Source of the DNA: Parasitella parasitica NRRL 2501
Taxonomy: Eukaryota > Fungi > Mucoromycota
DNA: 64,000 nucleotides
Direction: 5' to 3'
Assembly (NCBI GenBank): GCA_025201805.1
Contig: MU619241.1
Coordinates: 90,368 to 154,367, forward strand
The notes below the pieces were generated by a model. It saw only the letters and a list, made by a program, of their open reading frames with translations. It made no database searches and was not told the DNA's origin. The position numbers and the translations under genes are program-made. Below, in pieces: positions 24,638 to 64,000 of the stretch (within the stretch, counting starts at the first letter, position 1; every line of letters starts with the position of its first letter).

Positions 24638-24647
24638 NNNNNNNNNN
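24638..24647. other. Assembly gap (10 N) followed by a poly-A run
   Basis: N characters in the sequence. Confidence 1.
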
Positions 24648-61455: not shown

Positions 61456-61785
61456 CTATAATCTTGCGACTGGCCTGTTCTTGACGCACTGAATCAGATC
61501 AGAACCAGAAAAATGCGTGCATTGGTAGCCATGCTTCTCCAAGTATCTTTGTATTTCTTGCTTTTTTCCATAAACCATGACACCTTCAATTTTGGCAGAG
61601 TTGTTGAGGAAGGCACAGACTAATCCTCTGCCTACATTGTCATCATCAATTGTGAGTTTACTTGAATGAGCCGCGTAGCGATCGAGAAACTGTTGAAGGG
61701 TGTCAGCGAGTTCAGCTTGTCGAGACTCTAGATATTTATAAACAGCAGGTCTAGGGATGTCAGAATGTGCCATATAGCAAGACAT
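61456..61785 (-). CDS. Hypothetical protein (about 109 aa)
   Basis: Open frame with ATG at 61785 and plausible amino-acid composition; no recognisable motif. Confidence 0.45.
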   Translation of the reverse strand: MSCYMAHSDIPRPAVYKYLESRQAELADTLQQFLDRYAAHSSKLTIDDDNVGRGLVCAFLNNSAKIEGVMVYGKKQEIQRYLEKHGYQCTHFSGSDLIQCVKNRPVARL

Positions 61786-61906
61786 TTTTGGTTGAAAAAG
61801 TGGAGCAATTGAAAGCAAATGAGCATTTTAAGGAGACCTTAAATAAACGTATTTTCCAAAACGAACACACACTCTTTGCATTTCCAAATCTGTCAATGTA
61901 AGTTTT

Positions 61907-62100
61907 TACAGCCGTTCCAACACCAAAGGGCGGATTTTTAAATAAAAGGGCGGATACAGTTGACGAAACTAGGTTGGGCCAATGAAAATAAATTTTGGTC
62001 ATTTCCAAATTGAGTTGGGACACGATTACAAAAATGGGTCACCAATACGAAAATGGGACAACAAGATGAAAATGGGACATGAGTACGAACATGGAGATAA
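61907..62100. mobile_element. Putative DNA-transposon terminus with subterminal direct repeats downstream of the Fanzor gene
   Basis: TA|CAGCCGTTCCAACA start at 61907; aaagggcggat twice (61925, 61945); about five 19-20 nt units with a 'tgggac' core at 62015-62098. Confidence 0.5.
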
Positions 62101-62205
62101 TGTTAGTATCTTTCAGAAGAGTCAGAATTGTTACAGCTTCTTACCTGCAATATCTTTAAGTTGCTGACTCACCGAAGTGAGCAGCAACAACCACATTGGA
62201 GGTGG
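62100..62205 (-). ncRNA. Candidate Fanzor omegaRNA scaffold overlapping the ORF 3' end
   Basis: Hairpin ACCT-C-CAATGT-GGTT-GTTGCTG-CTCAC-[TTCG]-GTGAG-T-CAGCAAC-TTAAAG-ATATTG-C-AGGT (62203 to 62143), then AGAAG...CTTCT. The boundaries are inferred. Confidence 0.6.
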
Positions 62206-64000
62206 CGGTAGGTCTTTTGAAGACCTGGGGGCGGCCATTTCCACACCAAATTGATGTGGCAATGGTGAGCATGTTCTTCGAGGCCATGGCATCGCGATTC
62301 CAGTAANNNNNNNNNNNNNNNNNNNNNNNNNNNNNNNNNNNNNNNNNNNNNNNNNNNNNNNNNNNNNNNNNNNNNNNNNNNNNNNNNNNNNNNNNNNNNN
62401 NNNNNNNNNNNNNNNNNNNNNNNNNNNNNNNNNNNNNNNNNNNNNNNNNNNNNNNNNNNNNNNNNNNNNNNNNNNNNNNNNNNNNNNNNNNNNNNNNNNN
62501 NNNNNNNNNNNNNNNNNNNNNNNNNNNNNNNNNNNNNNNNNNNNNNNNNNNNNNNNNNNNNNNNNNNNNNNNNNNNNNNNNNNNNNNNNNNNNNNNNNNN
62601 NNNNNNNNNNNNNNNNNNNNNNNNNNNNNNNNNNNNNNNNNNNNNNNNNNNNNNNNNNNNNNNNNNNNNNNNNNNNNNNNNNNNNNNNNNNNNNNNNNNN
62701 NNNNNNNNNNNNNNNNNNNNNNNNNNNNNNNNNNNNNNNNNNNNNNNNNNNNNNNNNNNNNNNNNNNNNNNNNNNNNNNNNNNNNNNNNNNNNNNNNNNN
62801 NNNNNNNNNNNNNNNNNNNNNNNNNNNNNNNNNNNNNNNNNNNNNNNNNNNNNNNNNNNNNNNNNNNNNNNNNNNNNNNNNNNNNNNNNNNNNNNNNNNN
62901 NNNNNNNNNNNNNNNNNNNNNNNNNNNNNNNNNNNNNNNNNNNNNNNNNNNNNNNNNNNNNNNNNNNNNNNNNNNNNNNNNNNNNNNNNNNNNNNNNNNN
63001 NNNNNNNNNNNNNNNNNNNNNNNNNNNNNNNNNNNNNNNNNNNNNNNNNNNNNNNNNNNNNNNNNNNNNNNNNNNNNNNNNNNNNNNNNNNNNNNNNNNN
63101 NNNNNNNNNNNNNNNNNNNNNNNNNNNNNNNNNNNNNNNNNNNNNNNNNNNTATTGTCTTCTGGAGATGATGGAAGCACTCTTCTAGCAAATAAAACTCT
63201 GCACGTATAGCCATCAGTGTACAATCCGTTAAGAAACATTTCCTTTTTCTTCAGGCAATGTTAAAAGCTTTTCACAACTATATTTTTTTTTATCAGCAGT
63301 TTGATTCATAGATATGTGTATTAGCAGTATTTACCTTTGAATACCCAGCTTTTTGAAAGCAAAAGCTTGATAGAAGCACCTTTGTTGATGATCAAAAGAG
63401 GATTCATTGGCTTGCTTCTTTTGCTTGGCCTCTGGGAAAATTCCGGTCAGGTTCTGGGCATCAATCTTTATGAACCGCCAGTGCAATGAGGGATTTGGGA
63501 ATAAACTAAAACGTCTTGGAAGCGGGGGCTTCGTTGAGTCGGCCTTGTCCTTTTGAGCAGCTTGGGTCCTGTATATATCATCGTATTTGTTGAGAATATA
63601 CCGTAATGCCGATAAAATTTTGAAGAGTTCATTGTTTAAGCTTTCTTTAGTCAGTGGAAGCGTGGACATGCGATTTTTGACCTCTAAAATCAAAGGATTT
63701 AAGAAACTAGTAAGATTACTGGCCACATCCGGATCAAATAGGGCAAGAATATCAACAGAAACAGATGAAGGTTGGGAATTTGTAAGCACTTGGTCGTATA
63801 CGTGATTATATACCAAGTTCTTGATACAGCCGATCTTCGCATCCTAGTTTATGTAATTTTAGTATAACAATTTGAGAAATTGAACATATATATTGAAATG
63901 CTTGTTATTATATCTCGTTACTTACGGGGTACTCTGTCTTCAGTGTATATATGAAGTAGTTACATATGATGTTTTCAAAGTTTTCAATATAGTAGTTGTT
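62156..64000 (-). CDS. Fanzor1 (TnpB/IS200-IS605-derived RuvC RNA-guided nuclease); 5' end outside the window, centre in an assembly gap, one apparent frameshift
   Basis: NNYYIENFENIICNYF | ...RRFSLFPNPSLHWRFIKIDA..FYQAFAFKKL | ..FLNGLYTDGYTCRVLFAR [gap] YWNRDAMASKNM..IW.GNGRPQVF (RuvC-III NRD). Introns at 63844-63925 and 63278-63334. Confidence 0.82.
62306..63151. other. Assembly gap (846 N) inside the Fanzor ORF
   Basis: N characters in the sequence. Confidence 1.

Follow-up and report, generated by a model that had tools for sequence, protein, structure and literature searches.

We favour, with moderate confidence, reading a hairpin in the last codons of a transposon-borne Fanzor1 gene as stem-loop 1 of its omegaRNA, within a transcript that is spliced in such a way that the host flank of the element would be brought in as the guide. 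Fanzors are eukaryotic relatives of TnpB and Cas12 and are under development as compact genome editors; to our knowledge, little is known about how their guide RNAs are made in eukaryotic cells. If the proposal is true, a guide assembled by the spliceosome would be a eukaryote-specific answer to the long inverted repeat that lies between scaffold and flank, the prediction of native Fanzor guides would change, and Mucorales scaffolds for Fanzor editing might improve when used in their spliced form. The features lie on the minus strand of the window (the whole stretch of 64,000 nt of DNA that was analysed) and are collected in Table 1.

Table 1. Features of the element and of its transcript in the window
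Feature	Position	Strand	Basis or remark
Fanzor-carrying element, part within the window	61955..64000	-	left end at window-equivalent 65647
Visible last coding stretch of Fanzor1	62156..62306	-	RuvC-III motif YWNRD; tail ...ATSNVVVAAHFGESAT, then stop
Small upstream stem GCCAC/GUGGU	62190..62206	-	almost invariant
Core hairpin, stem-loop 1 equivalent	62160..62188	-	GUUGCUGCUCAC-UUCG-GUGAG(U)CAGCAAC; folding z = -5.09 and covariation
Linker UUAAAGAUAUUGCAG	62145..62159	-	exon 1 ends at 62145; run contigs
Stop codon TAA	62156..62158	-	two nucleotides 3' of the hairpin
GT-AG intron, 176 nt, GTAAGA...CCTAG	61969..62144	-	junction contigs, X1 and X2
TACTAAC branch-site-like box	62102..62108	-	no AG in the following 131 nt, until the 3' splice site
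Right terminal inverted repeat	61957..62094	-	holds GTCCCATTTTC-like direct repeats
Exon 2 within the element, UUUCGUCAACUG + UA (TA duplication 61956-61955)	61955..61968	-	contigs, fold
Predicted guide, host flank just after the TA (UCCGCCCUUUUAUUUAAAAA)	61935..61954	-	length inferred

The hairpin in the last codons of the Fanzor1 gene

To judge by its sequence, the gene that carries the hairpin is a Fanzor1 gene. Its open frame ends ...YWNRDAMASKNMLTIATSIWCGNGRPQVFKRPTATSNVVVAAHFGESAT before the stop codon, the C-terminal piece matches the C-terminus of SpuFz1 from Spizellomyces punctatus (PDB 8GKH; E = 6.7e-5), and the motifs DPGRRD and INEFKTSK were found in the visible pieces of other copies. 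On the visible parts of the protein, Pfam matched PF07282 alone, and that weakly; the middle and N-terminal parts gave nothing useful when searched against the PDB. The closest named protein was a Parasitella parasitica hypothetical protein (94% identity over the last exon), which makes the genome that of Parasitella or a near relative, and the tail ATSNVV..HSGE..A is conserved as protein across many homologues. Runs of N occupy 62307-63151 (845 nt, inside the Fanzor gene) and 24638-24647 (10 nt) of the window; the Fanzor coding DNA is mostly N in the other copies too, at differing places, and only visible pieces were used. The N-terminal part of the gene also holds a short minus-strand intron, GTAAAT...ATAG at 63280-63337, whose equivalent in the copy L007 reads through in frame.

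The core hairpin overlaps the last nine codons of the gene on the same strand. GTTGCTG (62188-62182) and CTCAC (62181-62177) pair with GTGAG (62172-62168) and CAGCAAC (62166-62160), with U62167 as a bulge and UUCG (62176-62173) as the loop, and the minus strand reads GUUGCUG CUCAC UUCG GUGAG U CAGCAAC UUAAAG from 62188 to 62154. The 41-nt core folded at -18.7 kcal/mol, and none of 200 shuffles folded as well; this core stem, first proposed in a sequence-only reading of the window, is therefore real. A 111-nt stretch around it reached -30.7 kcal/mol (z = -3.18). The best fold of that stretch includes the pairings CAAUGU/AUAUUG and ACCU/AGGU, with which the earlier reading had extended the stem to about 22 bp, and the second stem AGAAG/CUUCU that it had added, but neither the extension nor the second stem is part of the consensus structure of 13 homologues described below; the second stem lies inside the intron, and the AGGU of the putative outer stem is the 5' splice site. 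Nor did a special role for the UUCG loop hold up: among about 22 genomic copies only 4 carry UUCG, and UCCG stands in the rest and in every run contig mapped over the hairpin (X1, X2, X16); both are UNCG-type loops. A search of Rfam gave only sub-threshold chance matches, on the opposite strand.

The genomic copies are 86-100% alike and vary too little for a covariation test. We aligned 13 homologous 3' ends drawn from related families of this genome, other Mucorales assemblies and metagenomes (alignment A1). RNAalifold placed an outer helix at columns 25-27/51-53 and an inner helix of seven pairs at columns 30-36/41-47. In the consensus hairpin 90.5% of cells were paired, against 22-45% when the partners were slid, and the inner helix was 88.5% paired and showed covariation. 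Double changes occurred in 14 cells at five pairs (pair 31-46 was seen as AU, UA, GU, CG and UG), and the observed score was reached by none of 500 shuffles; some stem columns never vary. In the homologue L097 the inner stem is a different one (CACC/GGUG) and the protein tail, AAPSSVTA, is shorter and different too, yet the hairpin persists, with a bulge in the same position. The hairpin ends just before UAA in all nine homologues folded, and two homologues, L091 and L096, folded no better than their shuffles. The small upstream stem is nearly invariant, so that covariation speaks neither for nor against it. Across these 13 Mucorales 3' ends the hairpin has been preserved by compensatory changes, and the view in the earlier reading that RNA structure shapes the protein tail is very likely right, the conserved tail codons being constrained by the hairpin.

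Furthermore, the hairpin stands where a published Fanzor scaffold has its first stem-loop. The 71-nt omegaRNA of PpFz1 from Parasitella parasitica consists of a hairpin, CCAAAG-UUAUCG-CUUUGG, followed by UCAAUUAAUGCAG GUAAGCAACAU, with the guide from about position 50, and both it and a second Parasitella omegaRNA run from hairpin to stop codon to AAUGCAG/GUAAGC (Saito 2023, PMC10432273; Xu 2024, PMC11423790). The window has the same order of hairpin, stop codon and AUAUUGCAG GUAAGAAGC; in both cases a Mucorales Fanzor1 has a hairpin over its last codons, a stop and (U)GCAG/GUAAG. By cryo-EM, stem-loop 1 forms seven pairs in three Fanzor1 complexes and lies on the RuvC and TNB domains (PMC10432273, PMC11423790). 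The PpFz1 scaffold is small, with two stem-loops of which the first sits on RuvC/TNB; the likeness to the window hairpin is one of layout, and the stem sequences are unrelated. A covarying stem-loop 1, CUUGAG/CUUAAG, is also given for the second Parasitella locus in the table of Saito 2023 (PMC10432273). Three patterns of the PpFz1 omegaRNA sequence found no match in this genome, where it may be absent or within N. Because the hairpin covaries and occupies the place of PpFz1 stem-loop 1, it very likely belongs to the scaffold of the Fanzor guide RNA, in agreement with the sequence-only reading.

The element and a probable intron behind the stop codon

The Fanzor gene lies in a Tc1/mariner-type element with a TA target-site duplication and terminal inverted repeats of about 125-140 bp. 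The whole element measures 3,693 bp (61955 to window-equivalent 65647). Its 3' region exists in many copies (at least 40 matches, 86-100% identical), and all copies end exactly ...CGTCAACTG/TA (CAACTG/TA) before unrelated flank; inverted copies of the last ~125-140 nt occur ~3.7 kb away, and the left end reads TA/C(T/A)GTTGAC. The interior of the element reads mostly as N; its length leaves little room beyond the Fanzor gene, so the element is probably non-autonomous. The hairpin is just internal to the right inverted repeat, about 200 nt from the element end. Since a guide must come from the flank, this distance was a puzzle.

Several minor observations concern the repeats. The right inverted repeat contains five to six direct repeats of ~11 nt (61975-62090, minus strand), GTCCCATTTTC-like and ~20 nt apart, whose number differs among copies because entire units have been inserted or deleted, and which may be transposase binding sites. 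The copy L007 (contig C99 of this genome) has a 4-nt duplication at the element tip (CGTCCGTCAACTGTA). Runs X16-X19 (organism I) contain very deep short contigs that are 85-99% identical to the inverted repeat and to the region of the hairpin, and related elements are thus abundant in the runs of that other organism.

Contigs of public runs were mapped onto 61500-62306; that X1 and X2 are RNA is only a guess, and contigs cannot reveal RNA ends, strand or level. One X1 contig matched the flank of this very locus (61500-61954) with no mismatches, went on through the element tip to 61970 and jumped to 62147. Two further contigs, one from X1 and one, whose flank is different, from X2, begin TACAGTTGACGAAA and resume at 62145. 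Read on the minus strand, ...GAUAUUGCAG (62145) is joined to UUUCGUCAACUGUA (61968-61955), and the 62145/61968 junction sequence, present in the contigs of two runs, has no match in the DNA of the genome. The sequence removed, GTAAGA...CCTAG, which follows an exonic CAG, has canonical splice sites. It begins 11 nt past the stop codon, with 10 nt in between, ends 14 nt before the element end, and spans the spacer and the whole right inverted repeat except its tip. Splicing is the best reading of these contigs, because the splice sites are canonical, the flank is identical and the junction is absent from DNA. The earlier prediction of one continuous RNA of 100-150 nt, from 62205 to about 62090, accordingly failed, 62144-61969 being removed; with the RNA spliced, both that extent and the outer stems were wrong. 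A 5' splice site at GGTGAGT in the 3' arm of the hairpin was discounted, as the contigs read through it.

The interior of the intron was examined for a branch site. Between the TACTAAC box and the 3' splice site lie 134 nt, an unusual distance for a branch site, and no consensus box was found nearer. Only 0.9% of shuffles were free of AG over the zone that follows the box, as were 21 of 9002 minus-strand windows. A box of this kind followed by an AG-free zone would be expected of a distant branch site. In addition, X1 had no depth at 62094-62120, despite at least 20 genomic copies of that stretch.

Layout of the spliced RNA and the proposed guide

The spliced RNA folded into the small upstream stem, the core hairpin, a 10-nt linker and a hairpin UGCAGUU-UCGUC-AACUGUA, after which the flank begins. 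The seven pairs UGCAGUU/AACUGUA span the exon junction and end on the TA; the last five bases of the linker, UGCAG (62149-62145), belong to its 5' half. Scaffold, TA and flank adjoin in this way only in the spliced form, in which contigs pass from 62145 to 61968 and into the flank. One X1 contig runs from exon 2 into the flank of this locus, and flanks differ between copies. The same layout is predicted for L092 and L097 in other genomes and for the L057/58 and L064 families in this one: a 5' splice site soon after the stop, an intron over the inner repeat, 10-14 nt left over, and a U(A/G)CAGU...ACUGUA hairpin. The consensus of splice site and transposon tip by itself accounts for the CAG/CUG pairing at the junction, but not for U at -5, a purine at -4 or U at +1. 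The right tip is ACTGTA in all tip-aligned copies and the left tip ACAGTA in 7 of 16; the latter would break the junction hairpin, and the tips are thus not strictly symmetric.

We propose that transcription would pass the stop codon and the right inverted repeat into host DNA, and that the spliceosome would then remove the 176-nt intron and link ...SL1-UUAAAGAUAUUGCAG to UUUCGUCAACUG-UA-flank. At the junction another short hairpin would form, with its end at the TA duplication; the host flank would come directly next, as guide, and the target would be the empty site, T-TA followed by flank. Trimming of the spliced RNA to a small RNA, its binding by Fanzor and its use for cleavage are predicted steps.

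The flanks themselves are biased on one side. The base before the left TA was T in 16 of 16 insertions (left ends L098-L113), preceded by A in 10 of the 16 (often ATTA), and the first base after the right TA was unbiased (A5, C8, G7, T4; n = 24). A symmetric preference of the transposase would show on both sides, and the asymmetry therefore fits a target-adjacent motif (TAM). T-TA on the left flank looks like a candidate for such a motif, and it is a testable one.

Among known systems, SpuFz1, which is alike at its C-terminus, has a scaffold that reaches the tip of the right inverted repeat including the TA, and its guide consists of 14-15 nt of flank; as in this element, a conserved motif precedes the left TA (CA-TA in SpuFz1, T-TA here). 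Unlike in SpuFz1, about 200 nt separate the hairpin from the element end here, of which 176 nt are spliced out. A comparable arrangement is that of ISDra2 TnpB, whose reRNA/omegaRNA covers the 3' end of the gene for the nuclease, stops at the right end of the element and reads into the flank, with a target-adjacent motif on the left; in contrast, ISDra2 is a bacterial IS200/IS605 single-strand transposon without a spliceosomal intron. IStrons, which combine a group I intron with TnpB, also bring together splicing and guide-RNA formation in one transposon transcript, but there the self-splicing intron competes with the omegaRNA, whereas here the spliceosome would build it (PMC10690162). A 2026 review states that the 3' duplication belongs to the scaffold in solved Fanzor structures, which fits a spliced layout ending on TA, and spliceosomal maturation of Fanzor guides goes unmentioned in it (PMC13565253). 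We found no report of such maturation in the full-text literature searched, a body that leaves most subscription papers outside. Relative to that literature the proposed spliced assembly of a Fanzor guide RNA would be new, while the hairpin as stem-loop 1 matches a published type.

Alternative explanations and further Fanzor1 families

The hairpin could instead be stem-loop 1 of a short unspliced omegaRNA, with the fixed sequence after GCAGGUAAGAAGCUG (~62133-62114) as guide and splicing as the ordinary removal of a 3'-UTR intron. The RNA bound to PpFz1 on expression in yeast was indeed unspliced, and cleavage was obtained when it was used in a TAM screen (PMC10432273, PMC11423790); an unspliced short hairpin, GCAG/CUGU, is also possible in this copy. 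However, no insertion site can be marked by a guide that all copies share unchanged, and X1 lacks depth over part of the intron even though the genome holds many copies of it. Moreover, the 'guides' of the two Parasitella loci, 58 and 59 in the supplementary table of Saito 2023, are nearly identical (GUAAGCAACAUCCA.CAAACAGAGC...), with locus 59 extending to an ACTAAT box. Guides from unrelated loci would be expected to differ; near-identity means that the RNAs recovered from yeast continue within the element instead of entering flank, and these 'guides' look like intron sequence. The expression yeast may simply not splice GUAAGC introns. We consider this explanation unlikely.

PpFz1 thus differs from the window in that its RNA was unspliced and its 'guide' is conserved element sequence, whereas GUAAG is used here as a 5' splice site. 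It is tempting to go further and regard the spliceosome as obligate for making guide RNA wherever a Mucorales Fanzor1 element has long inverted repeats: loss of the repeat would leave a compact scaffold of two hairpins next to the host flank, and the Parasitella omegaRNAs obtained from yeast would be unspliced precursors whose 'guide' is intron. We put this forward tentatively, at slightly less than even chances. PpFz1 RNA is active in vitro without splicing, and splicing may therefore not be required.

An equally improbable explanation is that the hairpin acts in cis on the mRNA, in the use of the 5' splice site, in termination or in stability, with no guide role, and that the intron just strips the repeat from the 3' UTR. 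The 5' splice site follows 15 nt after the hairpin, its AGGU is paired in the unspliced fold, and an exon junction so close after a stop codon, here 10 nt, would escape nonsense-mediated decay. Against this, the pairing that would mask the splice site is not conserved, position and layout match the Fanzor-bound stem-loop in cryo-EM, and a junction hairpin ending at the TA would be left unexplained, as would the T bias of the left flank. That the hairpin is a by-product of the conserved protein tail, or a DNA palindrome such as a transposase site, with no RNA role is very improbable: the conservation of the tail in many homologues and several invariant stem columns agree with it, but double compensatory changes at five pairs, the hairpin that L097 keeps with another inner stem and tail, and a location not within the inverted repeats, to which a transposase would bind, all argue against it.

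The genome contains at least four or five further Fanzor1 families, with C-termini 40-58% identical. They were found on contigs including C15, C88, C10, C21, C8, C44 and C77, and also on C149, C39, C33, C48, C104 and others (L055-L064, L067, L081). Several of these families reside in TA-flanked elements that show a stop codon, a 5' splice site, an intron and a short terminal exon.
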